DNA of 64,000 bases, from assembly GCF_006345805.1 (NCBI RefSeq), contig NC_043010.1, forward strand, positions 59,086,001 through 59,150,000, read 5' to 3'. Each line of letters begins with the position of its first letter. Within the stretch, counting starts at the first letter, position 1. This stretch comes from Octopus sinensis. Lineage: Eukaryota. A model generated the notes under the pieces. The model searched no databases. It saw nothing but the letters and a program-made list of their open reading frames with translations, and had not been told where the DNA came from. The translations under genes were made by a program, and so were the position numbers. This document shows, one piece after another, positions 6,123-54,312 of this stretch.

Positions 6123-6152
6123 ATTGGTCGTCTGGTAAGTCATTCAACCAAT
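6123..6152 (+). promoter_or_regulatory. Paired inverted CCAAT boxes (ATTGG...CCAATCAG), putative P1 promoter
   Basis: ATTGG 6123-6127 and CCAAT 6148-6152, both fitting the NF-Y consensus. Recurs ~175-215 nt upstream of every leader. Confidence 0.6.
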
Positions 6153-6326
6153 CAGATTCTCACTAAACCATAGAAAGAAATCACTGACAAAGATTAGCAT
6201 TTACATTCCTAACATTATTCAATCAAACAGTTCAATTATAAAATATTATACTTATTGGCATTTATATGTATGTCTGAAAATAGTAAACATCATCTTTGAG
6301 GCTAAATACATACAGGATATTATCAG

Positions 6327-6530
6327 ATGGACGTACACTCAGAAAACGTACAACTTCAGTGACACATGCAACCCTCTCCTAGCAGCAGACTCTCTGCCTG
6401 ACGTGCTACACTACTCCATCACCATAACAGCCATTGTCACACCATTACAGCAGCACTTACAATGGATCTTTCTACAACAATACATCTTTCTCTTTCTCAC
6501 TGAATAACCAATGATATAATTACTAAAAAG
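6327..6530 (+). other. Conserved 204-nt putative non-coding leader exon of P1
   Basis: Near-identical in five copies, ends AAAAAG|GTAAGT, has stops in all frames, and the next ATG exon begins with a splice acceptor at 11834-11835. The true 5' end (TSS) is uncertain. Confidence 0.65.
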
Positions 6531-6642
6531 GTAAGTTTCCATATAATCTTTTATAATCTCATTTTATGTAATAAATCTCATTGGATTTGTTAGATATTGT
6601 TCTCATATCTTCAATATTCTTATCTACTCAAGTCACAAAGAC

Positions 6643-6995
6643 CAAAATTTTTTGGGAAAGGGCCAGTTGATTAGATCAACCCCAGTACATAACTGGTACT
6701 TAAGTTATCAATCCTGAAAGGATGAAATGCAAATTGGATATTGGCGGAATATGAACTCAGAACGTAAAGACAGATGAATACCTATTTCTTTACTACCCAC
6801 AAGGGGCTACACACAGAGGGGACAAACAAGGACAGACAAACAGATTAAGTCGATTACATCAACCCCAGTGCGCAACTGGTACTCAATTTATCGACCCCGA
6901 GAGGGATGAAAGGCAAAGTCGACCTTGGCGGAATTTGAACTCAGAACATAACGGCATTTCGCCCAGTGTCCTAACGTTTCTGTCAGCTTGCCGCC
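6643..6995 (-). mobile_element. tRNA-derived SINE (two nested or partial copies)
   Basis: The minus strand shows a B-box-like ttctgagttcaaattccgcc followed by gtcgactttgcctttcatcc...ggggtcgataaa. The same family recurs at ~32700-32880 and ~63880-64000. Confidence 0.6.
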
Positions 6996-7011
6996 ATCCT
7001 AACATCTTTAA

Positions 7012-7179
7012 TCATTATCATCGTTTAACGTCCGTTCTCCATGCTAGCATGGGTTGGACAGTTCGACCGGGGATCTGGGAAGCCAGAAGGCTGCACCAGG
7101 CTCCAGTCTTATCTGGCAATGTTTCTACAGCTGGATGCCCTTCCTAACGCCAACCACTCCGTGAGTGTAGTGGGTGCTT
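7012..7179 (-). mobile_element. Short 3' end of RTE-type LINE (GAT-tailed family)
   Basis: cgtttaacgtccgttctccatgctagcatgggttgga...cttcctaacgccaaccact, shared with other copies. Confidence 0.75.
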
Positions 7180-7950
7180 AATAATAATTCGTTTAGTTTT
7201 CCCTAATGCTGCCCATAATTGTTTATACCACAAATAAGTAGACGATGTTTAATACTTATTCTGTATTCACTTGCAGCAATAATATCTGTTTCTGTATTAC
7301 ATTTGTTACATATATTGATCAGTCGCTATAGAGAAAAGCCTTTATTACGTGTTTATTGTTTCATGTAAAGAATCTGTAATGATCTGTGTGAATACGAGAA
7401 GGAGCAGGATGGACATGTCAAGATGGCTGCTAAAAAATATGAATGTCTCTTGCTTCAACGTGTTCCAATCCGGTTGAAGTGTGTAAATTGTGAGCAGTGA
7501 TAAAGGGTTAGAGCTTTTGGCATTTTATAATGGAGGAGAAAATAGCATTCACAGCTGAAGGAAACAGAAGCAATAGCATATTGTGAAAGACAATAAAATA
7601 AGAGAAGAAACAGGTTTTTGTTTGTAGAGGAGAGAATACAGTTTATTTTGTGTAGGTTTTTCTTTCTAAAACATATTTATAAGTATGTCATTGGAGATTG
7701 TAATTTCTTCAGTAAAATATTTTCTTTACTCAGGTACTTTTATAATTTATCTAGTTGTATGAATTCAGTTTAAATTTTCTTTTATATTTTACAATATTTT
7801 TCTGAATCTAGCAAAGAATTTTGGTTGTAGTTATAATAACATTAAAGTTAATATTTCAGAGGAAGTGAAGGTGGCTTATATCTTAAATATGAATGAGATT
7901 TACTTTTTTAATTGAGAATAATTTACCATCATCATCAACCCCACCAGCAC

Positions 7951-7989
<39 letters not shown>

Positions 7990-8956
7990 TAACTTTATCA
8001 CATCAGTATAGACAGATATGATTCATAATCCCTGTCCCTATGTGTCTAGTTTAATAGTTAACAGAAAGACCAAACTCTGGGTGGTTTTCTGCTCCTCACT
8101 AAATAATGTCTACACATTTGATTCCCAGTTTGTGCTATTTCTGTGTGAAATGTTATGCCTGTATCACTTATTTGTTAAATAGTATCCATTCAGTGGAGAA
8201 TCTGAGGATAACAGTTAAGAAGGACTCATATGGAATTCTAATTCACACTGAATTCAGATTAGAACTTCAATAATAAAATTATTTTTAAAAATCACTTTTT
8301 GATAAAAACTTTATTAAAATTAGAAATGTTCAGAGATTTCGAGACTGGTTAGACTCTCATAATTGCTTTCTTTTAGTAAACATTACACCAAATTAATTAA
8401 TAAGTAATTTTCTTCATTTTAATGTATGGATGGATGTAGGCATCAAAATTTGTTGCCTGCACTCAATCTCTACCGTTGCATTCCTCACTTCCTTTCTCCC
8501 TAACCTTTAAGGCATCAGATTAACCCAGATCATTTTAGTTATTTTCTTACTCTAACTCTCTTTATTGGCTGACATTAATTGGTTTTCAGAAAAATTAACA
8601 CACTTCCTTATGGCCTAAATTGGCCATTGTCAGCATGTTTTATACAACATAAAAATTAGCTCAGATTGTACAGTCAAGACCTGGATTGCCTTTAAAGATA
8701 TCGGCTTTTATCATAATTTTCAAAATGATTGTGACTTTAGCATAAGTCTTGTGTCAGTCGTTCATGGAATGGCGTTTCTTGAGTTTTATGAACATTGACA
8801 GAATATTGGGATGCTTTCAGAGAATTCTCGACCTTGGGACAATGCTCCTCCTTCTCTCTCCCCTCTCACTTTATCCATGCATGTGTGTGTGATTCTGTCT
8901 CTCTATCTATCTATCTCTTTTTCTATCTATCTCTCTAGCTACCTATCTATCATATA

Positions 8957-9509
8957 TCCGGCAGGACAAGTGAGACCATAACCCGTGGCCTCTACCTGGG
9001 ACGTAGCCAGCCCACTTATGCATACCTTTCCTTCTTTTGACACAAACCCTACTTGTGAAGACCTGTTGAGGCAAGTGAAAATCGAAATCGAAATCTTTTA
9101 ACATCAATGGAAATTGTAGCTGTGATACCAGTACCGGTGGCACGTAAGAGAACCATCCGAACGTGGCCGTTGCCAGTGCCGCCCTAACTGGCCTCCGTGC
9201 CGGTGGCACGTAAAAAGCACCATCCGATTGTGGCTGTTGCCAGCCTCGTCTGGCCCCCGTGCCGGTGGCACGTAAAAAGCACCATCCGATCGTGGCCGTT
9301 TGCCAGCTCTGTCTGGCACTTGTGCGGGTGGCACATAAAAAGCACCCACTACACTCTCGGAGTGGTTGGCGTTAGGAAGGGCATCAAGCTGTAGAAACAC
9401 TGCCAGATCAAACTGGGCCTGGCGCAGCCTTCTGGCTTCCCAGACCCCAGTTGAACTGTCCAACCCATGCTAGCATGGAAAACGGACGTTAAGCGATGAT
9501 GATGATGAT
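8957..9509 (+). mobile_element. RTE-type LINE 3' UTR copy with (GAT)n tail
   Basis: Starts at ccggcaggacaagtga (end of ORF ...RQDK*), ends in gatgatgatgat next to (TA)n. Confidence 0.75.
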
Positions 9510-9644
9510 ATATATATATATATATATATAATGTGTGTCTATACACATATATATAGGCCTGGCTTTGGTGATGGGTGTTGTCGTATACCTTATTACTATG
9601 TATGTTGATCACAAGTTTGCTGATCTAAGAGACATGACTTGTAA

Positions 9645-10307
9645 GTTGTTGTTGTTGGCATCCTTTTTGTCGCGGGAGACAATGGAGTTGCGCATAAAAT
9701 AATCTAGTCTGGCTTTTACATTTCATGTCCTGATACATTTCCTGCTGTGGCTGTGTAGTCCTATCCTGGACAAACTCTCCCTCTGGCTGGTGCTGCAAAT
9801 GTAGCAAAGACTTTGCCTGGCTGGTTGTAATGTCATAGTTTCTTGTTGACGTCTTTTCTTGTCTTTCCATTTCTCCTCTCTCCCTCTCTCACTCCTTTGT
9901 GTTCCCTCTTTTACGGTACGTTGCCAATCTTCAAAGGCATGGGACAACAATAAGCTGACCAAGACCACAAAGATGAAGATTTACCAGGCATATGTACTTA
10001 GCACTCTACTGTATGGAAGTGAGACTTGGATGCCATAAGCACGCCAAGAGCGTCGCCTAAATATCTTTCACCTGCGCTGCCTCCGGAAAATTCTTAGCAT
10101 CAAATGGCAGAATCATGTCCCCCAACAAAGATGTCCTCAAGCAAGCAAGAATACCAAGCATATTTGCACACCTCACACAAAGACGTATGAGATGGCTTGG
10201 ACATGTTAGCTGTATGGAAGATGGCAGAATCCCCAAGGACATACTCTACGGAGAGCTTGCTAGGGGTACTAGGTCTGTGGGAAGACCGTTCTTATGATAC
10301 AAGGATT
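9645..10307. mobile_element. RTE/BovB-like LINE fragment with an internal inversion
   Basis: + strand 9930-10307 encodes KAWDNNKL..YVLSTLLYGSETW..RMRWLGHV..RIPKDILYGEL..GRP. The - strand 9645-9930 encodes the downstream part EDWQRTVK...YICSTSQRESLSRIGLHSH plus a (CAA)n tail. Confidence 0.8.
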
Positions 10308-10480
10308 TGTATGTATTTCAAAGTGTAACTGGAGTTTTATACCTTCAAACAAAACAAATATCTTAATATACAATGAGCAGTTTCCATTTTAATTATTCTT
10401 TTTACTTTTATTATTTTGGTGTTTTAGAATGAAATATATTTGTCTAACTAATGCCAAGCCATAAAAATTAAGATGCAAAG

Positions 10481-10872
10481 TATTCTCTTTTATTCTTTTA
10501 CTTGTTTCAGTCATTTGACTGCAGCCATGCTGGAGCACTGCCTTTAGTCGAGCAAATCGACCCCGGGACTTATTCTTTGTAAGCTCAGTACTTATTCTAT
10601 TGGACTCTTTTGCCGAACCGCTAAGTGACGGGGACGTAAACACACCAGCATCGGTTGTCAAGCAATGCTAGGGGGACAAACACACACACACACATATATA
10701 TATATATACATATATACGACGGGCTTCTTTCAGTTTCCATCTACCAAATCGACTCACAAGGCTTTGGTCGGCCCGAAGCTATAGCAGAAGACACTTGCCC
10801 AAGATGCCACGCAGTGGGACTGAACCCGGAAGCATGTGGTTGGTAAGCAAGCTACTTACCACACAGCCACTC
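10481..10872 (-). mobile_element. tRNA-derived SINE
   Basis: Minus-strand head gtggctgtgtggtaag (A box)...gggttcagtccc (B box). A partial second copy lies at ~48288-48545. Confidence 0.75.
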
Positions 10873-11182
10873 CATAGATTTATCATTAATTAATTATGTT
10901 ATCCCAGTTCTTAAGTGATTAGAATATTGTATTAATCAAATATTGTTAATAACGTGTTATTTAATCAATAGAGAATCGTAAGAAATACAAAGAGAACAAG
11001 ATTGATCTCCTTAAAACCAAACAGACAAGAGTAAAGTCAACTATAAGAATTGGTTGTCTGTTAGCATTCTGTGTTGTTAAGGATAAAGCTGAAGGATCTT
11101 TGGAATGGCTGCTGAGATGTTTATGTGGCACCAGTTCCAGTGTTGTCTATGTGACACCATCACCAGTGCTTTTTATGAATGT

Positions 11183-11566
11183 ACTAGCAGTATCGCCCGG
11201 CGTTGCTCGGGTTTGTAAGGGAAATAACTATAAAGTAATTTTAGAGAGTTATAGCCAAAAAATAGCAAAAAATGGGGAAAAAATGATGGTAAATTTTTTT
11301 GAGAGTTAAAATGGTCGAGTTGCGTCCCCTAGACAGTCTGTGGTTTGTGTTTCTAATTCTCGACCCCATGTCGAATTTATCGATTTTTTTCAGAACTGGG
11401 GGAACTTTTCAAAATTTTCGCTGCGTTAGTTTAGAATTATGACATTGGGCTATGTGTGTGTCAAGTTTCATCAGAATCGGTTGAAAGCTGTGATCAGGGT
11501 GAGGGTACAACCTAACAGACACACAGACACGCAGACAGACAAACTGCCGTTTATATAGAGAGAGAT
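11183..11566 (+). mobile_element. Non-autonomous Helitron-like element
   Basis: 5' actagcagtatcgcccggcgttgct and 3' (caga)n...tttatatagagagagat. The same 5' end appears inverted at 42006-42036. Confidence 0.6.
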
Positions 11567-11891
11567 AATCATTCTATGGTAGGCTGTTCTTTCCATCAGT
11601 TATTCAAAATGACATGAAGCCTGTGCATGTTGGTGCCATTCACCATAGTTTGAAGTCATTTCATTCATGTCCAGCTGGAAGTCTTGCATGGAAGAAATTC
11701 TTTTTCACAAGAATCATTGATTAACATTTACTTTAGATTTATGTGAACAAGGTTGTGAAATGATGTCTCATAAATAATTTTCTGTTACACTACATTGAAC
11801 TCTTGTTAAATGATGGACTTTTGTTTCTGTTTTAGATTTTATGTTCAGTATCCTGAGACATTTTTAACCAGTACCAACACTCAACTACAAC

Positions 11892-14159
11892 ATGTTCCTG
11901 TCATTGTCTATTGTATTGTCGCTGGTCCAGTGTGTCCTGACCATAGACCTTACCTACCATGTGGAAGAAGAGAGAAGTCCAGGAACCTATGTAGCAGACA
12001 TTGCTGCCGATTCTAAACTTTTGGACAATGTTAAACCATCTGACCAACATTTGATAACATTCAGTCAATTCAAACGAAAGGTGGCACAGTTATTTAACAT
12101 CACCAAAACAGGTAAACTGTACACTGCTCAGACACTGGATGCAGAAGATCTCTGCACATTCAACAAAGAATGTTCCAGAACTATGAAAGTTATTATAAAG
12201 AAAGTGGATAGTTTCACAAAAATATTAAAAGTCAAAATAATCATAGAGGACATCAATGACCATCAACCAAAGTTTCCTATAAAGAATATCAACATACAGT
12301 TTTCTGAGAATATAGCTAAAGGTGCAAAACAATCAATACCCAATGCTATGGACAAAGATGTTGGATTTCAAAACTCATTAGCACAATATGAATTAAAATC
12401 AAAGAATGGAGAACCATTCTCTTTGTCAGTGTCTAAAAGAGTTGATGGTATTTCTTCACTTAAAATAGTTTTAAAAGAAACATTGGACAGAGAAATCAAA
12501 GATACATATTTATTACAGGTCATAGCTAAAGATGGAGGTTCACCAGCAAAACAAGGTATTTTAAATATAAATATTTCCATAATAGATGAGAATGACAACC
12601 CACCTGTATTTTCTAAACCTCTGTATAATGTATCCATACAAAGTACACATCATAAAGCCAAACCCATCATTGTTTTATCTGTGAGTGATGCTGATTCTGG
12701 TGAAAATGGTAAAATTACTTTCCATTTCAGTCCAAAAACATCAGATTTTGCAAAAAGCTATTTTGAAGTAAATGAAAACAGTGGAACTATTTTGTTAAGT
12801 AAATATACAAGTTTAGGAAAAAAGAAAACTTATGAACTGTTTATAGAGGCCAGAGATGGAGGCAACCCTCCCCTCAGTTCCATAGCAACAGTTCTTGTGA
12901 ATGTTATCAACCAACACAATAATCCTCCTTCTATTGATATTGATTATATTTCTGCAATCAATGACAACACAGCTACCATTTCTGAAAACATCAAAGTTGG
13001 TAGTTTCATTGCTTATGTGATGGTCACTGACAATGATGTGGGACAAAATGGAGAGGTCAGCTGTGATATCAAACATGATACATTCAAACTACAGTCAACG
13101 GGATCTAAAGAATATCAAATCATTCTAAACAAACCAGTGGACAGAGAAACACAAGGACACTATAACATTCCTGTCTCCTGTCAAGATAAAGGATTACCTC
13201 CTCTCAAAAGTGTTAAAAGCCTCTCTATCCAAGTGACTGACATCAACGATGTACAACCACAGTTTACCAAAGATACATTCCAATTCCTCACCTACGAAAA
13301 CAAAGATAAAGACTTCCCTATTGGTTTTGTCAATGCCACTGACCCTGATCTTGGATCTGCTGGACAACTCACATATTCTCTGCTGCGTAAAGAAAAATCC
13401 AATCTCCCATTTCTCATCACCAGTTATGGCTTCATTTCAGCGACCATGTCATTGGACAGAGAGAAACAAGATGTGTATAAGTTTGAGGTTTTTGTCAAAG
13501 ACAATGGAAGCCCATCTCTGAATGACACAGCGAATGTTGTTGTTGAGATTCTAGATCAAAATGACAATGCTCCGTATTTTACATATCCTAGTAGTGACCC
13601 TTACACGCTAAATGTGCAGTACCATCCGCAGAGTAAGAGTGACATCACAGTTTTGAGAGCGTCTGATGAGGACAGTGGAAACAATGCTTTCCTCAGATAT
13701 GCAATCATACAAGGAAATGATAAACAGTTGTTTAGTATGAACTCACACAGTGGTGCTTTATCCTTCTCCAGACAAGTTCATCTAAATGATGCTGGAAGTT
13801 ATGAGCTGGTGTTTGTTGTGAAGGACAGTGGTAGTCCAGTTCAGTCGTCAACAACTAGTGTCACTTTGGTATTGGCTGTTAGTAACGAGACATCACCAAT
13901 GTCGAAGAGTGGACCTTTACAATCTTCAGGTCAGGTCCATATGACATGGGTTATTATCATTGTATCATCAGCAGTAATAATATCAGTGGCTATTGTTGTT
14001 TCTATAAAACTGTGTATTATGCAATGTATTAAACACAGAGATAACACAGCTGCTGCCACAAAGAATACAGCCTACCAAGGTAGAGCAGAGATGAAACAAT
14101 TGTTGTACCAGACTAACACTTCTGTTGCTATGTCGAGAACTTTACCAAAACCTACCCCA
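11892..14159 (+). CDS. Pcdh: Protocadherin P1, large coding exon (signal peptide, EC1-EC6, TM, proximal tail; 36-aa tail deletion)
   Basis: 770-aa ORF 11892-14204 with cadherin motifs (LDAE/LDRE, DxNDN, DxD, DGG) and the protocadherin EC1 Cys-X5-Cys motif (CTFNKEC). Acceptor ttttag at 11834-35, donor CCA|GTAAGT at 14160. Spliced product 832 aa. Confidence 0.95.
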
Positions 14160-14330
14160 GTAAGTGGAAACATTACATTTTCTCTCTGTAAAAGTGAACA
14201 ATGAAATCTCTTTGAATATGTTTTAACTTCAATAATACATTCCAATATTAAATTGTTCTCTTTCCATGTTGATTGTAACTTCCATTGTTTGGTGTCTTCT
14301 CACATTTCTTTATCGTTTGTTTGTCAACAG

Positions 14331-14484
14331 AAATACTGTCAACCTGTTGTGGTGACATCAAGTGATGATGCTGTGGAAGATAATGCTACTATGGTTTGCA
14401 ACTATACATCAGATACAATGTCATCCAAGAGAAGTGGTAGACAAGGAGACTTGAAACATTACGAAGAAATACCAGGTGTATCAG
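14331..14484 (+). CDS. Pcdh: P1 cytoplasmic exon (KYCQPVVVT...EEIPGVS)
   Basis: caacag acceptor in phase 0 matches the upstream donor. 154 nt, phase-1 GT donor, present in all six copies. Confidence 0.85.
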
Positions 14485-14740: not shown

Positions 14741-14817
14741 ATCAAAGTATTTATAAAAACAATGACACTTCTACAAGAAAGGAATCCACGGAAGAAACAC
14801 CAGTGAAGCATGTATAA
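14741..14817 (+). CDS. Pcdh: P1 terminal coding exon (DQSIYKNNDTSTRKESTEETPVKHV*)
   Basis: ttttccag acceptor, phase 1 keeps the frame open. The last codon varies synonymously between paralogs (GTA/GTT/GTC) before an invariant TAA. AATAAA at 14971. Confidence 0.8.
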
Positions 14818-39232: not shown

Positions 39233-39253
39233 ATTGGTCTTTCCTCATCCAAT
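39233..39253 (+). promoter_or_regulatory. Paired inverted CCAAT boxes (shorter spacer), putative P4 promoter
   Basis: ATTGG 39233-37 and CCAATCAG from 39249. Confidence 0.6.
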
Positions 39254-42036: not shown

Positions 42037-42345
42037 TTTAAAAAAAAATTTCTTCCAAGTGCTGCTGCTGCTGTATGTCCTTGCAAGGGGCGTAACTCAA
42101 GCAATACAGAAGCTTCGAATTTAGTTTAAAGACTTTTAGATAATTTATGGTGCAAATAAAACCATGTGGAATTCACATGAATATAATGTTTTGGCTTAGA
42201 ATTAAATGTAACATACACCTTGCATGAATTTGAAAGGGAAGTGAAACGTTTGAAATAAGCATCATTATAATTATTCAGACAGAATAAATACGGTGTGCCA
42301 CATTCAAGGTGGAATAGATATTTATTAATGCTAGACGTTAATAGT

Positions 42346-42676: not shown

Positions 42677-43094
42677 CGTTAATAGTATGTGAATATCTGT
42701 TCAGTTGCGTACTGGTGTCAAGTCTAATCGACTGAACCCCCTCCCCGCAAAATTTTGAGCCTCGTGTCTAGAGTAGGAAAGAGACTAAATTATAAGCAGA
42801 TAATGATTTGAAATTTGATACGATTATTATTATTTTGTCTTCTTGTTGTTCCTTTGAAACAATCAGGAAGTGAAGTAAATCAGCAGAGAGGGCAGGAATG
42901 GCTTCAGACATTGTCATTTTGTTAAAAATCGATGAGGGGAACCTTTGTGGTGGTGGAGATTCAATAGAGCTCAATGTAAATATATAAATACATTTAACGC
43001 ATTAAATATCCGTAGGAATCATTAGATTACAACGTCCTTTCCATTGCCCCCAATATTCTACTGAACTATTTCCTACCTCCACTGGACTCTCTTA

Positions 43095-43300
43095 CCCTCC
43101 CCCTCTATCCCTCTCTCTCTCTCTCCCTCCCACCCTCTCTCCCCTCGCTCCCTCTCTCTCTCCCTCTCTCTCTCTCCCTCTCTCTCTCCCTCCCTCTCTC
43201 TCTCCCCCCTCTCTCTCCCTCCCTCTCTCTCTCCTCCCTCTCTCTCCCTCCCTCTCTCTCTCCCTCCCCCTCTCTCTCTCCCCCCTCTCTCCATCTCTCT
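43095..43300. repeat. Long (CT/CCCT)n polypyrimidine tract
   Basis: Directly visible. Confidence 0.95.
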
Positions 43301-45485
43301 TCTTTTGATCATCGGTCGTGTTATTCTTTGCTCTGCGCTGAAAGATTGTTTTTGTGCTGAAAATTGTGAAAATTTACTGTTTTGGTCGTCGAAACCACTT
43401 CTTTTCTGCTGTTGCAGCAGAGTTTTTCCCGTTCTTTCCCCCTTGAAGCGGCAAAAAAACATGAATTTGCCACCAATTTCTTCCGAGTCGGAGAAAAACT
43501 TTGAAAATTTGTTTGAAGGCGATGAAGGCGAAAATGTGGGAGGAGGAAGGTGAAAGTATAGAGGCGTCTCGCGCGCGCGTTACAAAAGCAGACGACAAGA
43601 TGTCGAGCGAGGCTACGACACAAGAGGAAAAGTCAAAAATACATTTTGTGAGTGCAGCAACTCGCCCCTGCGAAAATATAGTTATTAACAAGGAAGAATT
43701 AAAGAAATACCAAGGTTTACTAAAGAAAGAAGGTGATAATTTGAAGTTGCTCCCTCCCAGTGAATTAATTTACGCGACGGAGAGAAAAACTGTGATATAC
43801 AAAACATATAATGTGAAAAATAGGAAAATTGACTTCGTGCCGAGGGAAGCCATAGGAAAATTCTTGAGGCCGATATGGCAACAAACAAGTTATATAACAA
43901 GGGGTTGTCGCTTCGGCACTGTAGAGGTGCGTTACCCTAGCGAAGAAAAAGCTAGGGAACATCCAACAAGGACATTGAAGTCTGAAGAAGTGGTTCTCCT
44001 GCCGACTTCAAAAATCACAGTCGCGGATATACCACCCGGAATAGATGTGGCCTGGGTGATAGCCGCTATTCTCATAGCAAAGAAGAAGAAATTTCAATTC
44101 TTTAATCTAAGAGATACCACCACATGAACTGGTTTGGACAAGATTTAGAGCTTGTCATCCAAGCAAATCCCTCAGACTTAGAAAAATTGCCCAGTTCCCT
44201 TACATAAGGTCGAGCTGTAAGAAGAAGACAGCCAAAGAAAACGCAGCAGAAGAGGCAAGGACGCCGCCGAAGACAACGACCACACCACTAGAAATAGCAG
44301 CCACGTCGCGCACCCCAATTGCCGAAGTACAGCCGACAGCGGGAGAAAACAACAACAACATCCAGGAGTGGGTCAACGTGGAACCTTCAAAAAGAAGACG
44401 GAAACGGAAAAACCCACCCTCTTCGGATACACAGGACTATGCTCCGAGACAGACAAGCACACCCACACCCACACATACAGTCACAAACACACACGTAGCC
44501 AAAAAAACACACACACTGGAAAAAGCACACACAAACACACACACACACACCTACAAACACCCATGCTTTTACAAGCACACACACACACACCCCTCCACAA
44601 TCGCCTAATATAAAAAAGAGAAACACCTTCACGGCGATAAACAAAATAATAAACTATTAAGAGACAAAATTGTTTCAATGAAATTGGCGAAAAAATATAT
44701 CGCAATAGATGTAAATAATACTATTCTTGAAAATGTCGAATTTTATACCAAAGACAACTATTTTGAACTAAAAAAATCTTTTGTGGAGGATGTCGGCCTG
44801 TTACAGATGAACTTTTCAAGCCATCTGTCCAGGCAATTCGCGAAAAAAATGACTTCGCAAACCACAACACTCACAGACAGAAAAGAGGAGGGTGAAACTA
44901 CACCCTCTCTCCCATTAAAACAGTAAGTTTTAAACATTCGACTTATTTTTCACATTCTCATTTAAACTCGGTTGTTTAAATATTTGCGGCCTGGGGTCGT
45001 ATTGGAAGCAAGGCTACCTCCTTAACAACCTTGGGTCGCATCGTTTGGATGTAGTTGTAATTACCGAATCCAGACTGAGTGGGCTGCAGGCTTTTTCGCC
45101 CCTTCTAAACGGCTACGAGAAATACGTTTCTCCCTGTCGACCAGGAGTGGCAGTGCTGGTCAGAAAAAACCTGGATTTAGAGATTAGAACTGTCTTTATA
45201 GATCCAGAAGGCAGGTTGGTCGTTTTGGATGTGACGCACAGCAGTGGTAAAGTGTTCAGGCTGGTTGCTGTCTGTGCTCCCTGCAAAGGAAAAGATTACT
45301 TCAAACAGTGAAAGGAATTGCAACAGGCGTGTTTATCTCCACTCTCGAGCTAATCGACTTTTTCGTTTTCCACATGAAACGGAAAATAAGGCTGGAGAAG
45401 AAATGCCTGTCGCAAAGTGTGTTTCGTAAAAGATGGAAGTATGTTGCGAGTGAAAAAACCTCTTTAATCGAGAATGTAAAAAAGG
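43292..45485 (+). mobile_element. L1/Tx1-like LINE: decayed ORF1 and start of ORF2 endonuclease, internally deleted
   Basis: From 44961: FKLGCLNICGLG...LDVVVITESRL...GVAVLV...DPEGRLVVLDV...FRLVAVCAP, an L1/Tx1-type APE N-terminus. ORF1-like 43501-44127. No RT domain follows. Boundaries are approximate. Confidence 0.7.
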
Positions 45486-46227
45486 AGAAGCAAAGTCTTC
45501 AGTGTGAGTATGTGGTTTGTGGGGTCAACCGCGTCCTCCGCTTCATTTTTTGTTAATCACTCATTCTCATTTAATTGTTTGTTTATTCATATGTTTCGTC
45601 TCATTCAATACCCTGACCCCAACGTTTGTTTTGTCTGTCCCCGTATTGTCCCCTCTTTTTCTCAACCTTATGGTGAATAAAGAAATTCTCCCCCCCCCTT
45701 CTCTCTTCCCTCCTCCTCTCTCTCTTAAGATTTCTTGCAATCTTTGGAAATGCGCTGCAGTATATCTTATTCTGTAGAAAGGCTACTGCTGACTCTTATC
45801 ATTCCTACTTCCAACATCTCAAAGGTAATGGAGATAGTTCTTCACAGTTTTCATAAAGCTACATTTCCTGGGCACCTACTCTTTGATGTTCAAACTCTAG
45901 TGGACACTAACCTTTGAGAAACTCAGTGAAAAACCTTACTGTTGCACCTGACATTAATATATTTAATTGTGCCTGAAATGCAAATCTCCAATCAAAACAT
46001 CCTGCCAACTGGTTCCATTTATCCATTGGACCGGAGACTTCTTATCAGATTTCACCATTGGTGTGTATTAATGGGACTCTCTCTGACCACCTGTCTATCA
46101 ACACTGGTATGCCTGAAGGTTTGGTTTTGTGTCTCCCTAGACATCAACAGCCTACATGTCATCACCTCCAACTCTTTTGTCCATTCTTTTGCAGCTGATA
46201 CTTCCTTTCATTTTTCTATTACCTTCC

Positions 46228-46650
46228 ACACTGAGGCAATGACTAGTGACCAAGACCTTTGGAAGTATGCTGTGCATGAGAAGACCCGGCAGGACAAGTG
46301 AAACCATAACCCGTGGCCTCTACTTGAGATGTAGCCAGTCCACTTATGCATACCTTTCCCTCTTGGGACACAAAACTCTGCTTGCAAAAACCTGTTGAGG
46401 CAAGTGAAATCAAAATCAAAATCAATAAAAAATCAATGGAAATTGTAGTTGTGATACCAGTGCCGGTGGCATGTAAAAAGCACCCACTACACTCACGGAG
46501 TGGTTGGCATTAGGAAGGGCATCAAGCTGTAGAAACACTGCCAGATCAGACTGGGCCTGGTGCATCCTCCTGGCTTCCCAGACCTCGGTCAAACCGTTCA
46601 ACCCATGCTAGCATGGAAAGTGGACATTAAACGATGATGATGATGATGAT
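46228..46650 (+). mobile_element. RTE-type LINE 3' end with (GAT)n tail
   Basis: TEAMTSDQDLWKYAVHEKTRQDK* followed by the family 3' UTR. Confidence 0.75.
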
Positions 46651-46779
46651 CTCCACATGCAACCCACAAACCTTTTGCCAGCCCTGTATTGGCTCCATGA
46701 AGAGACATTGAAAGCATTCTCCAGTCTTCTCTCCTTTAACTACTCTATAAATATCATTATCTACAGCCACTGGTTGTGA

Positions 46780-47040
46780 CTATGACCGTTCATGGCTTTG
46801 GCCTGACTTGATAAGCTTTTTCCATATTGGTTGGTTTATCGCTTGAGTTTGTCATTTATTATGATGAATTCCTTTCCACTTAATATTCCTTTTTTGCAGT
46901 GTCTTTGAATCTCAGTCGAGGTCTTCCATTCTTTTCCCTTGCATAGTTAGGAGTAAAGGATTTGTATGGGGAGTCTGTTGTTGTCCATCCTGTGTACACG
47001 ACCCAACCAATGTAAATTTCTGTCAGTGAGGAATCAGACC
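46780..47040 (-). mobile_element. Old RTE-like RT C-terminal fragment
   Basis: Minus strand reads LHWLGRVHRMDNNRLPIQILYS*LCKGK. Confidence 0.6.
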
Positions 47041-48287
47041 AGCACATCATAGGATCCCTTCATAATTTGTCATTGCTGTCTCATCATATATGTATGTAAC
47101 TTGTCGACATGAGCTTTATGGACTGTCCAGGGTTCAGCTCCATACTGCAGGGAAGAAAGCAAATAAATATCAAGGAAACAGTATCATATCCCACCTCTTA
47201 AACGTGAACAAGATGCAACTAGAACCCCAACATTCCTTATAAATGCTTCAGTGTATTCACTTGTAATGAGAACCAACAGAGGGCAGTGCAGCTCTCTTTA
47301 TCTCAGGTTGTCAACTTCTAGATGTTCCTCCAGCTAAAGGGTGGAGGTGTCAAGAGGGTGTCTGCTTGTGACTACTTAAATGCCTAAAATGATGGGTGAT
47401 GGCATGGTACATGTTATCCAACCACACTCACTTGCAATTGTGACAGATGGCCATACTTTGTACATCTTCAACATGGCAAAGACTGCCTCGCATAAACTGG
47501 CCGTTTTCTTCAGAAACAGAAAATACTTCAGACCTCTTACAAATTCTAACCCTCTTCAAAGTTGATGTCAGATTTACTGTAGAATCTACTTAGGCTCTGC
47601 TGCTACATGTACAGACATCCTAGCAAGCATCCAAAAAACAAAAACAAAAAAAAACCCCACCTGGCTCATTGGCAAGAAGCCAGTTACTGACCCACCTATA
47701 TACTATTTCTTTACTCAATTTTGTCTTTCATTACAGTGGACCCTCTTTCTTGAGAATAGCTGGTCACATGTCATGTCTTCCACAAACTCCCAACTCACTT
47801 GTCTCTCCTCTTCTAATTATCCACATTGTACCCAGCACTACACAAGCACCGCACTTATCACAATTGCCATTCATTTCTCCTTTGAGTAACAACCTGGAAT
47901 TCTTTTTGTGCCCTTGTATTTCCTACAGCCATCAACTTTAAAATATTGAAGAGAAACATTAACTGCATCCATTCGCCCCAACCCCATTTTGTGTAATTTA
48001 TACAATTAGTGGATCTGTACAATGCAACAGAACATATGGACTAATTCTATAACAACAGCAAAAAAGTCTGATAGAGAATATTAAATATAGAAAGAAATTT
48101 ATTCATTGCTCTTACAGATCAAAAATAATTCTAAATACTTAATTTTCATGGACCAAAACATTATGGTGAAAGATATTTTCCCACCATTACACTACATCAT
48201 CTTGGATCTTGTCCTCATTCATTAAAGGATGTCTTTCACATCAGATACTAATGATGACTCTACATCTGCCAATTTGATAAATCAACT

Positions 48288-48545
48288 ATTCTACTCTTTT
48301 ACTTGTTTCAGTCACTTGACTGCGGCCATGCTGGAGCACCGTCTTTAGTTGAACAAATCTACGCCAGGACATTTTCTTTGTAAGCCTAGTACTTATTCTA
48401 TCGGTCTCTTTCGCCACTAAATTACAGGGGATGTAAACACACCTACATCGGTTGTCAAGCAATGATGGGGGGACACACACACAGTATATATACAACCGGT
48501 TTCTTTTAGTTGCCGTCTACTAAATTCACTCACAACCATGTGGTT
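48288..48545 (-). mobile_element. tRNA-derived SINE, partial
   Basis: Matches 10481-10750. Confidence 0.7.
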
Positions 48546-48801
48546 AGCGCCTCTTTTCTCAATTTCCTCACTTAAACATTTCTATATAGAATACAAAAAG
48601 AAAAAAGGCTTAGTTCCAAGTTCTCTATTATGATAATTGTTCCTATATATTTTCATAAGATAATCTTAATCTTTGGAGACAATATACTTATGTACATTTT
48701 GTGTGTTGAAATCAAACAATAATAACTAATGTATTTTTGTTTTAGGTTAATTCTTCAACAAATCAGAACATTTTTAACCAGTTCCAACACTCAACAGCAA
48801 C

Positions 48802-51177
48802 ATGTTACTGTCGTTGTCTATTGTATTGTCAGTGGTCCACTGTGTCCTGACCATAGACCTTACCTACCATGTGGAAGAAGAGAGAAGTCCAGGAACATAT
48901 GTAGCAGACATTGCTGCCGATTCTAAACTTTTAGACAATGTTAAACCATCTGACCAACATTTGATAACATTCAGTCAATTCAAACGAAAGGTGGCACAGT
49001 TATTTAACATCACCAAAACAGGTAAACTGTACACTGCTCAGACACTGGATGCAGAAGATCTCTGCACATTCAACAAAGAATGTTCTAGAACTATGAAAGT
49101 TGTTGTCAATAAAGGAAGAAGTATTACAAAGATATTAAAAATCAAAATTGTAATAGAAGATATCAATGACCATGAACCTAAGTTTCCAAAAACTATAGTG
49201 TATATAGAATTTGGAGAAAATGATCGTAAAGGTTCTAAAGTATCACTACCGAATGCCATAGACAAAGATGTTGGATTTCAAAATTCATTAATTCAATATA
49301 AATTAAAATCAAAGAATGGAGAACCATTCTCTCTGTCAGTGTCTAAAAGAGCTGATGGAATTTCTTCTCTTAAAATAGTCTTAAAAGAATCATTGGACAG
49401 AGAAATCAAAGATACATATTTATTACAGGTCATAGCTAAAGATGGAGGGTCACCAGCAAAACAAGGTATTTTAAATATAAATATCTCAATAATAGATTTG
49501 AACGACAACCCACCTGTATTTTCTAAACCTTTATATAATATATCCTTACAAAGTACACATCATAAATCCAAACCCATCATTGTTTTATCTGTGACAGATG
49601 CTGATTCTGGGGAAAATGGTAAAATTACTTTCCATTTCAGTCCAAAGACATCAGATATAGCAAAAAGCTATTTTCAATTAAATGAAACCAGTGGAGGCAT
49701 TTTGTTAAGTAAATATTCAAGTTTGGGGAAAAAGAAAACCTACGAATTGTTTATAGAAGCCAGAGATGGGGGCAGCCCTCCCCTCAGTTCTATAGCTACA
49801 GTCCTCGTAAATGTTATCAATCAACACAATAATCCTCCATCTATTGATATTGATTATGTTTCTTCAGTCAATGACAACACAGCTACCATTTCTGAAGATA
49901 CCAGAGTTGGTAGTTTCATTGCTTATGTGATGGTCACTGACAATGATGTGGGACAAAATGGAGAGGTCAGCTGTGATATCAAACATGATACGTTCAAACT
50001 ACAGTCAATGGGATCTAAAGAATATAAAATCATTCTAAACAAACCAGTGGACAGAGAAACACAAGGACACTATAACATTCCTGTCTCCTGTCAAGATAAA
50101 GGATTACCTCCTCTTAAAAGTGTTAAAAGCCTCTCTATCCAAGTGACTGACATCAACGATGTACAACCACAGTTTACCAAAGATACATTCCAATTCCTCA
50201 CCTACGAAAACAAAGATAAAGACTTCCCTATTGGTTTTGTCAATGCCACTGACCCTGATCTTGGATCTGCTGGACAACTCACATATTCTCTGCTGCGTAA
50301 AGAAAAATCCAATCTCCCATTTCTCATCACCAGTTATGGCTTCATTTCAGCGACCATGTCATTGGACAGAGAGAAACAAGATGTGTATAAGTTTGAGGTT
50401 TTTGTCAAAGACAATGGAAGCCCATCTCTGAATGACACAGCGAATGTTGTTGTTGAGATTCTAGATCAAAATGACAATGCTCCGTATTTTACATATCCTA
50501 GTAGTGACCCTTACACGCTAAATGTGCAGTACCATCCGCAGAGTAAGAGTGACATCACAGTTTTGAGAGCGTCTGATGGGGACAGTGGAAACAATGCTTT
50601 CCTCAGATATGCAATCATACAAGGAAATGATAAACAGTTGTTTAGTATGAACTCACACAGTGGTGCTTTATCCTTCTCCAGACAAGTTTATCTAAATGAT
50701 GCTGGAAGTTATGAGCTGGTGTTTGTTGTGAAGGACAGTGGTAGTCCAGTTCAGTCGTCAACAACTAGTGTCACTTTGGTGTTGGCTGTTAGTAACGAGA
50801 CATCACCAATGTCGAAGAGTGGACCTTTACAATCTTCAGGTCGGGTCCATATGACATGGGTTATTATCATTGTATCATCAGCAGTAATAATATCAGTGGC
50901 TATTGTTGTTTCTATAACGCTGTGTATTATGAAATGTATTAAACACAGAGATAACACAGCTGCTGCCACAAAGAATACAGCCTACCAAGGTAGAGCAGAG
51001 ATGAAACAATTGTTGTACCAGACTAACACTTCTGTTGCTATGTCGAGGAATGCAGAAGAGATGGTGAAGCGGAATATCTATTCTGAGAGATCCAAGAGTG
51101 AATGTTATGCAGAAGGTCAGCTACAGAACAAATATGAATCTTCAGTTCAGTCGAGAACTTTACCAAAACCTACCCCA
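48802..51177 (+). CDS. Pcdh: Protocadherin P4, large coding exon
   Basis: 806-aa ORF 48802-51222. Acceptor at 48744-45, donor at 51178. Confidence 0.95.
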
Positions 51178-51348
51178 GTAAGTGGAAACATTACATTTTC
51201 TCTCTGTAAAAGTGAACAATGAAATCTCTTTGAATATGTTTTAACTTCAATAATACATTCCAATATTAAATTGTTCTCTATCCATGTTGATTGTAACTTC
51301 CATTGTTTGGTGTCTTCTCACATTTCTTTATCGTTTGTTTGTCAACAG

Positions 51349-51502
51349 AAATACTGTCAACCTGTTGTGGTGACATCAAGTGATGATGCTGTGGAAGATA
51401 ATGCTACTATGGTTTGTAACTATACATCAGATACAATGTCATCCAAGAGAAGTGGTAGACAAGGAGACTTGAAACATTATGAAGAAATACCAGGAGTATC
51501 AG
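51349..51502 (+). CDS. Pcdh: P4 cytoplasmic exon
   Basis: AG/GT bounded, 154 nt. Confidence 0.85.
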
Positions 51503-51954
51503 GTTAATAACTGCATTAGCAATATGTCTGACATCATTTTGTGTTAACCATTTAGTAACAACCATTTCTATTAAGTATATATTAAAGAAGAAAAAAATGA
51601 ACTTTGCCAAGCCATATCAAGCTGCTGTGGCAGTGCAGGCTCGTCACAGCAGTATGTTCTCAAGCTCAAAGTCACAGCCACAGCCTGCATACCAGACTGG
51701 CTGGTGGAGAGAACATGCTGACGTCCTTGTCCTGCAGTGGACCAACCATGGGAAATCCAGTCCAATATAATATTGCCAGTGTATCAGAATGAACTTCATT
51801 TATCAAAGTCTTAGTGAATATTTTCTGATAACACACTCCTGAATATAGTTATCTTAATAGTTTTCATTCTCATCTTTCCACATTTTTTAATTATTAAATA
51901 TGAAATTGATCAAAGTCATAATTTTGTAAAATGTGTTTCGTATTCAAATTCCAG

Positions 51955-52031
51955 ATCAAAGTTTATATAAAAACAATGATGCATCTACATCGAAAGATTC
52001 CAGTGAAGAAACACCAGTGAAACATGTCTAA
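51955..52031 (+). CDS. Pcdh: P4 terminal coding exon (DQSLYKNNDASTSKDSSEETPVKHV*)
   Basis: ttccag acceptor, GTC TAA end. Confidence 0.8.
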
Positions 52032-52283
52032 ATGCGAATTATCCCCATGTAAATATAAGATATAGAGTGTTCAGTACAAACGTAAGCATAAACATAAGGG
52101 CATGCACATTGTTCAATTAATATAGTGTTTAGCAGTATACATTATCAGAGCTAAGATAGTCTTCTACACAGCAGTCGTTTCACACGGTCCTTTCCCTTTT
52201 TTCTACATGAATATGTGACATGTGCATCACCAGTCGATATTAAAGTTAACATCTTAACATAGTCTTTTGTTTCGGTTCTTCAG

Positions 52284-52291
52284 CCAATCAG
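52284..52291 (+). promoter_or_regulatory. Single CCAATCAG box, putative P5 promoter
   Basis: The upstream ATTGG is replaced by TTCGG. The downstream cagattctcact context is conserved. Confidence 0.55.
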
Positions 52292-52468
52292 ATTCTCACT
52301 TACATGCAGTCAGAAATTGCTACAAAGATAAGCATTTTTCATTATTGATGTTATTAAATGAAACGATTTTGTTACGTTTAACTAAAGACTATTTTAATAT
52401 ATATCTATAAATATGTAAATAATGAACAAACATCTTGGAGGATAAATACATACACAGAATACTATTAG

Positions 52469-52672
52469 GTGGACGTACTCCCACAAAACATACAACTTCA
52501 GTGACACATGCAACCCTCTCCTAGCAGCAGACTCTCTGCCTGACGTGCTACACTACTCCATCACCATAACAGCCATTGTCACACCATTACAGCAGCACTT
52601 ACAATGGATCTTTCTACAACAATACATCTTTCTCTTTCTCACTGAATAACCAATGATATAATTATTAAAAAG
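52469..52672 (+). other. Conserved putative non-coding leader exon of P5
   Basis: 204 nt, GTAAGT donor at 52673. Confidence 0.65.
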
Positions 52673-54312
52673 GTAAGTTTCCATTTAATCTTTTTATAAT
52701 CTCATTTGATATAATAAGTCTTGCTGAGTGTTTTAGATATTGTTTTAACATATTTAATATGAACAGAAGAACAAAGGGCCTGACCACACATTTTACATTG
52801 CCTTGTCCATCTTGGTCCATCTTGGTCCATCTTGTTCTGTGCCACTAATATTTGGAAGGTGCTTATTGGAATGCTTCATATTTAAATTGCTTTTAATTAA
52901 AACAATATTTTATGTCTATTTCGTGTTTGTAGTAATTGTATTGCTTAGTAACATTCAACAGCAATTTGTACGATATGATGTAGCAGTGTATGTTTGTTTT
53001 TGTTTTTAGGAAGATATAATGAGCTTATATTGTAGATGGTGGTATAATGGTTATTCTTAAGTTGTTGTTTTTTTAATAAAATATGAAGAATTCTAGTAGA
53101 GTGTCTTTAAATCTGGTCTTAGTGTATTGGTTATTATCATTTATAATGTAACGAGGAGTTTGAGCTTTTTGGTTAACAATAATGGCAGACATATTAGAAC
53201 TCACCTCCATCGGGAAGTGAACAGTAATGGTAGCATGTTGAAGATAACAATACTGTGAAAAAGGCCAGCTTCACCTAGAATTAATGGACTATAGAGAATA
53301 CCATTTGTATTGTGTATATATTTATTTGGCAGCCATTGTAAATATAATTCAACATGACTTCCTATTTTAGTTTCTTCTAAAATTTTTGACATAATCTGTT
53401 TATTTTTCCACAATGTTTGCTAGTTGTTAGTTGTGAATTTTCTTTGAATTTCACTGTTTATAAACTTCTGTTATCTTTTAATTGAATTATCAAATTAGTT
53501 TTTAACAAATATAATATATAAAAGCTACATTGAAAACCATAAATCTATGTCTTTCACTTTGTATATTTATATGTTATGCCTCTATGTTATTGCTTCATTT
53601 CTTTCATTATTGATCCCTGGGCTTCAAAGTCTGCCAGCTGCTCTTCACCACCACTTGAACCCAAATGTTACACTTGCTTATGTTTCTTCCCAACGTTTTC
53701 AAACTCCCCCTTTTCCCTTATGCCTTCTCTCCTTCTAATATGAGACGCTGGTATATCAAATATACTACAAACCCCTACTAAGTCACAGTGCTATTGCTAA
53801 GCTATATATAACGTTTGCTCATATTCAGTAATTTTCTCTTTGAAGTGTTTCTAGAACTATTTTTGAATGAAAGCTTATCATTTGTATATATGTGACTAAT
53901 TAGTCACATATATTTTATCTCTTATGCCAGCCATTTACTGATTCCATGAACTGAGTTGTTGAAATTAACCCCATTGAAAACATTTTCCTATAGGGTTGTG
54001 CCAATCTTGTCTCCTTCAATGACACAAAGACACAATAACTATACATATATGTCACTAATTATTTTAAATCTCAAAAATACAAGTTTCTAGAGAGGTGAAC
54101 TTCAGTAGATCTTCAGGAACATTGGCCTCATAGGGAGTATGATTGTGAGGAACTACCAACATGTGAATGTCTCTATCACTGGTTACAATTTAATTTGTGG
54201 TTTTACTTAGAAGAATATATAACAGTTCCCCTTGTGCTAAAAACCTGTCTCAAGAACTTTCTTTGGCAAATGTTTTAGGAAATTGTTTTGAAATTTGAGG
54301 AATTAAAATGTG

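Follow-up and report, generated by a model that had tools for sequence, protein, structure and literature searches.

Sequence comparison makes it probable that each of the 23 protocadherin genes in one Octopus sinensis sub-array has its own CCAAT promoter and its own non-coding leader exon, with gene conversion accounting for the near-identity of the leaders and a uORF giving them a role. The window, a 64,000-nt stretch of O. sinensis chromosome 14 (C14), contains five copies of a ~202–204-nt block, as a preliminary description had claimed. BLAST of the O. sinensis genome returned 23 full copies and one 65-nt relic; because E-values for the block copies range from 1e-84 to 1e-103, this recurrence is far beyond chance. 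The copies are confined to C14, between 59,092,327 and 59,337,862 and on the + strand only, forming a single ~245-kb array, so the block is not a genome-wide repeat unlinked to protocadherin genes, a case that the preliminary description had raised. It had also placed one cassette upstream of each ATG exon in the window and called for a genome search; that search matched cassettes to protocadherin genes 1:1, in strict alternation throughout the O. sinensis array (23 cassettes and 23 exon starts, the latter counted at an identity of at least 89%). The features of the window, named according to the gene structure that we propose, are as follows.

655–1345, + strand, left edge of the array: incomplete copy, reduced to the 3′ part of exon 2 followed by intron 2 and exon 3
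6122–6155, + strand, proximal promoter of unit 1: inverted CATTGG and AACCAATCAG (NF-Y-type pair)
6327–6530, + strand, non-coding exon 1 (leader) of unit 1, core 6355–6530: stops in all frames, donor kept
6462–6503, + strand, putative uORF of unit 1 in ACAATGG context, MDLSTTIHLSLSH and stop: start kept across species
6531–11835, + strand, intron 1 of gene 1: free of conserved islands past ~90 nt after the donor
11836–14159, + strand, exon 2 of gene 1: acceptor TTTTAG, ATG at 11892
14331–14484, + strand, exon 3 of gene 1 (KYCQPVV...)
14741–14817, + strand, coding part of exon 4 of gene 1, ending ...PVKHV and stop: unconserved 3′ UTR after it
19020–19053, + strand, CATTGG/CCAATCAG pair of unit 2
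19225–19428, + strand, leader exon of unit 2: uORF 19360–19401
23423–25839, + strand, exon 2 of gene 2: ATG at 23464
27451–27485, + strand, CATTGG/CCAATCAA pair of unit 3
27693–27894, + strand, leader exon of unit 3: 2-nt deletion, uORF lengthened to 16 codons (27828–27878)
34548–36978, + strand, exon 2 of gene 3: ATG at 34603
39232–39256, + strand, CATTGG/CCAATCAG pair of unit 4, with a shorter spacer
39464–39667, + strand, leader exon of unit 4: uORF 39599–39640
48746–51177, + strand, exon 2 of gene 4: ATG at 48802
52284–52291, + strand, CCAATCAG box of unit 5: inverted ATTGG lost
52469–52672, + strand, leader exon of unit 5: uORF 52604–52645
60351–62780, + strand, exon 2 of gene 5: ATG at 60406

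Across the 23 copies, the core of the block (6355–6530 in unit 1) varies in only 14 of 176 columns, with a mean pairwise identity of 98.7%. The near-identity reported earlier for the last ~175 nt of the window copies is correct, the differences being one G/C, one C/T and the 2-nt deletion in copy 3. Likewise, all five end in AAAAAG/GTAAGT and all five are preceded by TAAATACA, as described, and the donor AAG/GTAAGT is present in 23/23 O. sinensis copies. Stops in all three frames agree with the view that the block is unlikely to be coding. A search of Rfam with the block gave no match and no significant secondary structure was detected in the leader (fold z-scores of 0.18 and 0.98); judged by its sequence, the block is not an RNA gene. 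The motifs TTCAGT and TGACGTG, singled out earlier as invariant, are indeed so in the O. sinensis copies because the entire core is invariant; as specific motifs they did not stand, TGACGTG not being kept in Argonauta and TTCAGT only loosely so. The 3′ end of the unit 1 leader at 6530 is firm, and candidates for its 5′ end, the transcription start, lie near 6205, 6330 and 6359.

Upstream of the block, CCAATCA(G/A) occurs in 5/5 window copies, 178–215 nt before the block start, and the inverted ATTGG claimed for 4/5 was found, as CATTGG, in four, with copy 5 lacking it. Together these boxes are a good match to NF-Y sites, which NF-Y would be predicted to bind. The exact ATTGG/CCAATCA pattern is present in 18/23 O. 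sinensis copies, and the pair also occurs in Octopus vulgaris, Octopus bimaculoides and most Argonauta copies, with a CCAATCA-to-donor spacing of 355–421 nt across three species. Among the O. sinensis copies the CCAAT region is only 71–79% identical and the region upstream of the core as a whole 53–79%, with indels and microsatellites; identity of the pair region is 0.61 within Argonauta and 0.69 between Octopus and Argonauta, and falls to 0.23–0.31 in the trough that separates pair and core. Two aspects of this layout count against reading the block as promoter plus leader. The usual position of a CCAAT box is −60 to −100, and here the boxes stand ~200 nt before the invariant core; moreover, TAAATACA, ~55 nt before the initiator-like TTCAGT, is too distant for a TATA box.

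We nevertheless read the block as the promoter and first exon of the downstream gene, because the ATG exons have a strong acceptor and Argonauta keeps the pair, the donor and the uORF. As the preliminary description stated, the ATG exons of all five window genes start at acceptors, TTT(T/C)AG, 41–56 nt upstream of the ATG; in four species, every ATG exon has a Y-tract and AG 40–65 nt before the ATG. The independent O. vulgaris assembly contains 15 cassettes alternating with genes, and Argonauta hians has 12 diverged homologues, 1:1 with genes, that retain the ATTGG/CCAATCA pair, a GT donor and a short uORF and have no acceptor at the 5′ edge. The invariant donor, the missing conserved 5′ acceptor, the conserved ATG-exon acceptors and the 1:1 alternation in three species all fit a leader exon. 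Each sub-array member would then be a complete four-exon gene, in which the cassette supplies the proximal promoter, with its pair about 375–420 nt before the donor, followed by a non-coding first exon that ends in AAG/GTAAGT and would be spliced over a 3–10-kb intron to the acceptor before the ATG. The proposed junctions join 6530 to 11836, 19428 to 23423, 27894 to 34548, 39667 to 48746 and 52672 to 60351. The structural half of the earlier reading, one promoter and leader exon per downstream gene, is thus supported by sequence comparison, with the exon 1–exon 2 junction, the transcription start and uORF translation standing as predictions.

Exon 2 of gene 1 encodes a signal peptide, cadherin repeats, the TM and most of the tail; compared with its paralogues, it lacks 108 nt, an in-frame deletion. 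The earlier statement that the CDS of the preceding gene ends in ...PVKHV is right, and this end lies in the small fourth exon. Self-BLAST of the interval between cassette and ATG exon found no further conserved island, and the Logan protein index returned no RNA contigs of this protocadherin subfamily.

An internal or 3′ exon, used in read-through from the upstream gene and then joined to the next ATG exon, is an improbable identity for the block. Its start lies only 0.44–4.4 kb past the previous stop codon, against 4–9 kb from its own ATG exon, and Octopus has YAGs at its 5′ edge. Read-through fusions have been reported for octopus protocadherins and are noted in the O. vulgaris PCDH annotation (PMC9712504), which also counts against a separate promoter and leader; in addition, gene models for O. 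vulgaris link exon 2 from one unit with an exon 4 that lies 4–5 genes further downstream. However, these candidate acceptors lack a Y-tract, and in Argonauta the AG is present at the two sites in 6/12 and 2/12 copies, whereas the GT donor is kept in 15/15 cross-species copies. The upstream gene already has its stop codon in exon 4, where conservation halts exactly (in gene 4 this codon ends at 52031, ~250 nt ahead of the next CCAAT box), no frame of the block is open, and a conserved CCAAT pair at fixed upstream spacing is hard to explain if the exon is internal.

In eukaryotes generally, uORF-bearing 5′ leaders control translation of the main ORF, and the first exon that we propose has a familiar look: a short uORF in a strong, indeed optimal, start context (ACAATGG) that ends before the main ATG and is conserved in position across genera. 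Its ATG is retained in 14/15 cross-species copies, its length ranges from 8 to 19 codons with the stop before the donor in every case, and start and stop remain in frame despite indels; about 75–85 nt would be left between its end and the main ATG for re-initiation. The conserved part of the leader likely has a post-transcriptional job, with translation controlled through the putative uORF. Unlike in other uORF leaders, the putative peptide is conserved only over its first ~5 codons, and a DNA motif could occupy these bases: ACAATGG occurs twice, in inverted orientation, and conservation of the upstream ATG could reflect this instead. CCTAGCAGCAG, CTGCCTG and GCCATTGT/ACAATGG may additionally serve as downstream promoter elements.

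A block that acts purely as DNA, as an insulator, boundary or enhancer, with GTAAGT incidental or a U1 site that modulates 3′-end formation of the upstream gene, would suit the intergenic position, the conserved CCAAT pair, the inverted ACAATGG pair, a third CCAAT 23 nt upstream of the donor and a semi-conserved ATTAAA-like element immediately upstream of the ATTGG box. We consider it very improbable, given that the ATG exons require an upstream donor and that of the block is the only conserved one, that the uORF frame survives indels and that the G-poor, strand-asymmetric composition suits a transcribed leader.

For the near-identity itself, the best explanation is local gene conversion, which would have been seeded on a selected island. 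In O. sinensis, nucleotide diversity is at most 0.012 across 1.5 kb that comprise the 3′ part of exon 2, the 171-nt intron 2 and exon 3; elsewhere it is 0.04–0.24 (EC1–3) and 0.25–0.29 (exon 4), and introns and intergenic DNA are 0–21% alignable between units. Conversion would thus also hold this 1.5-kb tract at 99% identity or more, while patches of EC1–3 diverge, as do exon 4, UTRs, introns and the upstream promoter. Rare core variants are common to non-adjacent copies. An assembly or polishing artefact, by contrast, is extremely improbable. With a core of 176 nt, about the length of a short read, polishing with multi-mapped reads could make the copies uniform, and in two window genes a single base is missing from a T run, as is typical of long-read errors (the frame of exon 2 in gene 5 is broken by a 1-nt deletion near 62245); against this, each copy has unique flanks, the rare variants persist and the island recurs, edges included, in the independent O. 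vulgaris assembly. Short-read polishing could still have removed some paralogue-specific differences within the core.

The further proposal, that equalised promoters are in competition for a shared distal enhancer and that each neuron thereby makes a stochastic choice of a few isoforms, convergently with vertebrate protocadherins, joins this anatomy to a choice mechanism; we regard it as unlikely, and promoter choice as speculation. The proposal is favoured by the presence of one cassette for each gene of a tandem array on one strand and by a conserved motif pair in the promoter, and single-cell data, in which a cell expresses about 19 PCDH genes, a mixture of cell-type-specific and broadly expressed ones (PMC9712504), are compatible with choice. 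However, 'equalised promoters' found no support: only the core, presumably transcribed, is uniform, and the upstream promoter is not. Because the identity extends also to 1.5 kb of coding sequence and intron, it speaks for conversion and not for a designed promoter, and because Argonauta keeps the cassette without the identity (~55% between its cassettes, which are not homogenised), function does not need it. Furthermore, the CRE-like TGACGTG is not conserved in Argonauta, the cassette has neither a CTCF-like core nor a CGCT box, its core has a single CpG, and the pair does not occur in other protocadherin arrays, its genome-wide frequency being not above control. Nothing in the sequence indicates a vertebrate-style promoter-choice system.

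In vertebrate clustered protocadherins, a conserved sequence element (CSE) in the promoter is bound by CTCF and promoters are chosen stochastically (reviewed in PMC7811963). The octopus sub-array resembles them as a same-strand tandem array in which each unit has one promoter with a short conserved motif, and also in its variable ectodomains, its constant cytoplasmic part and gene conversion within the array. It differs in that its units are whole genes with their own 3′ exons (PMC9068888), in that the promoter precedes a separate non-coding exon and a 3–10-kb intron rather than abutting the ATG exon, and in that a CCAAT pair of NF-Y type takes the place of a CGCT/CTCF element as the motif and is private to one sub-array, unlike the CSE shared among clusters. 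PMC6339937 cites chelicerate shortened Dscam clusters as expressed through alternative promoters; these too are invertebrate tandem recognition-molecule units with a promoter each, but their 5′ cassettes are spliced to shared constant exons, unlike the whole-gene units of octopus. The same paper cites Noonan et al. (2004) for concerted evolution of vertebrate protocadherin variable exons by gene conversion, and 'homogenization through gene conversion' has been described for cephalopod protocadherins (PMC9068888). As in such families, homogenised tracts accompany diversified ectodomain patches in an old array; unlike them, the octopus array has a ~176-nt, sharp-edged island that corresponds to the proposed non-coding exon and lies kilobases from the coding tract, for which the literature searched held no published description. 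In this octopus sub-array, the constant parts would be maintained by sequence homogenisation and not by splicing.

Besides a truncated gene fragment (655–1345), the window (C14:59,086,001–59,150,000) holds five tandem protocadherin genes, all on the plus strand. When annotated proteins of O. vulgaris and O. sinensis were aligned to it, each unit resolved into a four-exon gene, and self-comparison of the window left only three conserved islands per unit, with no further island in intron 1 between the cassette (a CCAAT pair and a leader block of about 204 nt; 6327–6530 for the block of unit 1) and the ATG exon. Exons 3 and 4 are present separately in each unit, and there is no layout in which variable exons lead to a shared constant exon.

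Features of gene 1 (by protein alignment), conserved islands (by window self-comparison) and retrotransposon insertions
Upstream of the large exon, plus strand: cassette, first of the four exons of gene 1
11836–14159, plus strand: exon 2, the large exon, with its ATG at 11892
14331–14484, plus strand: exon 3, 154 nt
Stop at 14817, plus strand: last exon, ending ...PVKHV*
Each unit, island 1: exon 2, intron 2 and exon 3
Each unit, island 2: coding portion of exon 4, with conservation stopping precisely at the stop codon
Each unit, island 3: cassette
3672–5894, minus strand: LINE-type retrotransposon ORF (endonuclease-RT or RT) in the intergenic DNA before cassette 1
19821–21743, minus strand: LINE-type retrotransposon ORF (endonuclease-RT or RT) in intron 1 of gene 2

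The two inserted LINE ORFs account for part, or even much, of the uneven unit spacing. Every element that the preliminary description had listed for the five cassettes was recovered from the window sequence at its coordinates, and the pairing of cassettes with protocadherin genes extends beyond the window. In the 2.72-Gb genome, we found 23 copies of the cassette and one 65-nt relic, and the copies alternate strictly with 23 ATG-exon starts (identity at least 89%). All 24 of 24 matches fall within one 245-kb array on chromosome 14 (C14), on one strand; the cassette is thus linked to protocadherin genes, as had been proposed, and a dispersed repeat or transposable element was rejected.

At its left edge (655–1345), the array carries a truncated copy limited to exon 3 and the 3′ portion of exon 2, and at its right edge (locus L037, 7799–7862; C14:59,337,799) it carries the 65-nt relic of the cassette core, which has neither promoter nor donor. 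The gene to the right of the relic is more divergent, with 82% at the 5′ end against 98.6% in the homogenised 3′ coding tract, and has no cassette. With a truncated gene fragment at one end and a relic cassette at the other, the array ends are indecisive as to which neighbouring gene owns the cassette.

The donor AAG/GTAAGT of the block is present in all 23 O. sinensis copies and in all O. vulgaris copies; across species, all 15 copies compared retain its GT, 14 with the longer motif GGTAAG. All five ATG exons in the window start at TTT(T/C)AG, with diverged sequence 5′ of the AG, and a pyrimidine tract and AG lie 40–65 nt before the ATG in 5/5 window genes and 10/10 Argonauta hians genes, and likewise in those O. 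vulgaris and O. bimaculoides genes that were examined. Argonauta hians has 12 cassette homologues that alternate one to one with genes and, because core identity between them is only about 55%, they serve as a phylogenetic footprint. At two candidate acceptors at the 5′ edge of the block, which would be needed were the block a terminal or internal exon of the upstream gene, AG is found in 6/12 and 2/12 Argonauta copies and the pyrimidine tract is absent. Moreover, the block is closed in all three frames. Given a conserved donor, an acceptor that is not conserved and an ATG exon in need of a donor, the block is well supported by comparison between species as the first exon of the downstream gene rather than a terminal or internal exon of the upstream one.

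The donors, acceptors and closed frames therefore favour the earlier proposal of a promoter and non-coding leader for each gene, with the exon 1–exon 2 junction and the transcription start site (TSS) inferred. Protein searches with the first 250 and first 100 amino acids found no RNA-derived contigs of this protocadherin subfamily. Two Logan protocadherin transcripts (L042 and L043) belong to other taxa or subfamilies, matching O. sinensis at only 75–76% across some 96 coding nt, and the cassette has no resemblance to their 5′ UTRs.

Conservation upstream of the donor has two peaks. The CATTGG/RCCAATCA(G/A) pair scores 0.61 within Argonauta and 0.69 between Octopus and Argonauta, the core scores 0.55 and 0.68, respectively, and the trough separating them falls to 0.23–0.31. 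RCCAATCA(G/A) and the inverted CATTGG are conserved in position across four species, and CCAATCA precedes the donor by 375–419 nt in O. sinensis, 376–421 nt in O. vulgaris and 355–394 nt in Argonauta. The same pair, at 84.7% identity, lies downstream of the gene on an O. bimaculoides contig (L049), which ends inside the next cassette, so that comparisons of the core exclude this species. The flanks of the CCAAT boxes fit the NF-Y consensus, and the cassette would fit an NF-Y-type CCAAT-box promoter. In NF-Y promoters, CCAAT usually sits some 60–100 nt ahead of the TSS. The box of the cassette precedes the invariant core by about 200 nt and a conserved initiator-like ATTCACATT by 55–60 nt. There are three candidate start sites.

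Candidate transcription start sites
Candidate 1: ATTCACATT, some 55 nt downstream of the CCAAT box
Candidate 2: about 30 nt after TAAATACA
Candidate 3: TTCAGT, at the start of the invariant core

The CRE/ATF-like TGACGTG, previously put forward as a conserved element, did not survive this comparison: its Argonauta counterpart reads TGACATA or TGCCGTA, and a conserved CRE/ATF site was rejected. About 25 nt before the ATTGG box is a semi-conserved AATAAATATTAAA / ATATTAAAG element (6100–6115, 52236–52244 and equivalents), a possible poly(A) signal for the gene upstream. Units 4 and 5 lie close together, the next CCAAT box following the stop codon by only about 250 nt.

The leader core is poor in G (19 in 176 nt). 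A structured non-coding RNA or miRNA precursor was rejected: the leader folds no better than shuffled sequences (z-scores of 0.18 and 0.98) and has no Rfam match at an E of 1 or less. An upstream ATG in the context ACAATGG is present in 14/15 cross-species sequences and in all Octopus copies. It opens a uORF of 8–19 codons, often beginning MDLST..., that always stops before the donor, roughly 75–85 nt from the main ATG. With upstream ATG and in-frame stop both conserved, the leader is putatively uORF-regulated, and the uORF is the leading candidate for the part of the leader RNA under selection. The uORF start falls within the second member of an inverted pair, CCATTGT (6431–6437) and ACAATGG (6459–6465), which are 21 nt apart and in the same places in every copy. 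The inverted heptamer, GCCATTGT, 25 nt upstream of the uORF-start heptamer, is conserved in Argonauta too. A predicted 7-bp RNA stem between the two (CCAUUGU/ACAAUGG) shows no compensatory changes in Argonauta and was rejected; as the inverted heptamer is conserved without such changes, a DNA motif (SOX-like) is a possible reading. A third CCAAT (AACCAATGA) is located 23 nt upstream of the donor.

Mean pairwise identity among the 23 O. sinensis copies, and nucleotide diversity within genes among the five window copies
Core, 6355–6530 in unit 1: 98.7% identity, 14 variable columns of 176
ATTGG/CCAAT segment: 79% identity
The 65 nt after the ATTGG/CCAAT segment: 71% identity
Microsatellite-rich trough: 53% identity
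The 54 nt before the core: 77% identity
Intron beyond +15: 65% identity, falling
EC1–3 (cadherin repeat) patches: diversity 0.04–0.24
Final 1.5 kb of exon 2, together with intron 2 (171 nt) and exon 3: diversity 0.012 or less
Exon 4: diversity 0.25–0.29

An independent O. vulgaris assembly has the same island with the same edges in 15 copies, which argues that the identity is not a quirk of one assembly, a concern raised at the outset. The promoter upstream of the core is not equalised across copies, contrary to what had been supposed: its segments are 53–79% identical, and the core alone approaches identity. Paralogue identity of at least 99% over about 1.5 kb of the exon 2 end, intron 2 and exon 3 was seen at 24623–26164 and in the equivalent tract of each gene (for example, 13400–14484 and 49960–51502).

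Intron 1 pairs are 1–21% alignable, and the 3′ UTR and intergenic segments share nothing except in one pair; the units are therefore old, consistent with a multi-copy array in Argonauta. Homogenisation of intron 2 points to conversion rather than selection alone, as do rare core variants common to non-adjacent copies (copies 3 and 7 have a 2-nt deletion in common, and copies 10 and 21 a G). Taken together, these patterns argue for homogenisation of two tracts by local gene conversion, and the 'constant' transmembrane (TM)/cytoplasmic region appears to amount to a segment kept by conversion rather than by shared exons. Argonauta keeps the cassette motifs without the identity, which indicates that function does not need identity; the identity is most plausibly a side effect of conversion seeded on an island under selection.

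Three of the window genes carry deletions: 1 nt in a TTT run at about 62245, which breaks exon 2 of gene 5; 1 nt at about 37270 in exon 3 of gene 3; and, in gene 1 (14031–14132), an in-frame loss of 36 codons (108 nt) from the cytoplasmic part. Each is either pseudogenisation or a long-read indel error. Two deposited O. vulgaris gene models (L050:10001–59197 and L051:10001–59095; OX597827.1) span 49 kb, and in both, exon 2 of one unit is joined to an exon 4 that matches at 100% only 4–5 genes downstream; the cause is either misannotation, given how nearly identical the exons are, or genuine read-through with long-range splicing.

The preliminary description had also likened the cassettes to the vertebrate system of protocadherin promoter choice, and here the two differ in three respects. 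Whereas vertebrate promoters each carry a CSE (CGCT box) or CTCF site, neither a CGCT box nor even a loose match to a CTCF core (a consensus, rather than a curated matrix) was present on either strand of the five cassettes, and the core holds only one CpG. One element serves all clustered vertebrate genes, but the octopus cassette is private to this 23-gene sub-array; the CCAAT pair has 62 matches genome-wide (18 of them in this array) against 62 for the control and is absent from other protocadherin arrays, so that a general octopus 'CSE' was rejected. Finally, vertebrate variable exons are spliced to shared constant exons, in contrast to the octopus units with their own exons 3 and 4, to which the O. 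vulgaris gene models with a distal exon 4 may be an exception. Promoter choice is thus unsupported beyond the anatomy of any tandem whole-gene array.

A convergent form of isoform choice could nevertheless be imagined without shared exons, although we consider it very improbable. Selection-guided conversion would keep the same 5′ leader, and so the same uORF control, and the same TM/cytoplasmic segment on 23 isoforms, and the CCAAT-pair promoters would compete for a shared regulatory element, such that neurons express subsets only. If true, this would rebuild the vertebrate logic of variable ectodomain plus constant parts.

Octopus protocadherins have been described as products of whole-gene duplication with probable gene conversion and no shared exons (PMC9068888), with about 19 PCDH genes of mixed specificity expressed per cell and read-through fusions (PMC9712504). 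On O. sinensis chromosome 14, 161 such genes were reported, and 'recent bursts' of protocadherins at 8–14 Ma were dated from coding distances (PMC9795677). The literature searched deals with coding regions and whole-gene duplication only and contains no description of promoters or leader exons of these genes. A multi-copy tandem sub-array is present both in Octopus (C14 59.09–59.34 Mb) and in Argonauta (BAAFZT010000037.1, 9.70–9.89 Mb), with introns unalignable between paralogues. An array this old implies that low coding distances between paralogues reflect conversion, and the published burst may be partly an artefact of it. Because conversion makes an old array look young, caution is due in dating bursts from coding-sequence distances. 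For short-read expression studies, the identical leaders and 3′ coding halves will multi-map; the 3′ UTRs and EC1–3 are isoform-specific. Judged from its sequence, the cassette is a gene part of an ordinary kind, distinguished by an unusually sharp putative conversion island and by a conserved uORF. It provides a testable promoter and 5′-leader model for this octopus protocadherin sub-array, one that predicts NF-Y dependence and uORF-mediated translational control across the 23 isoforms.
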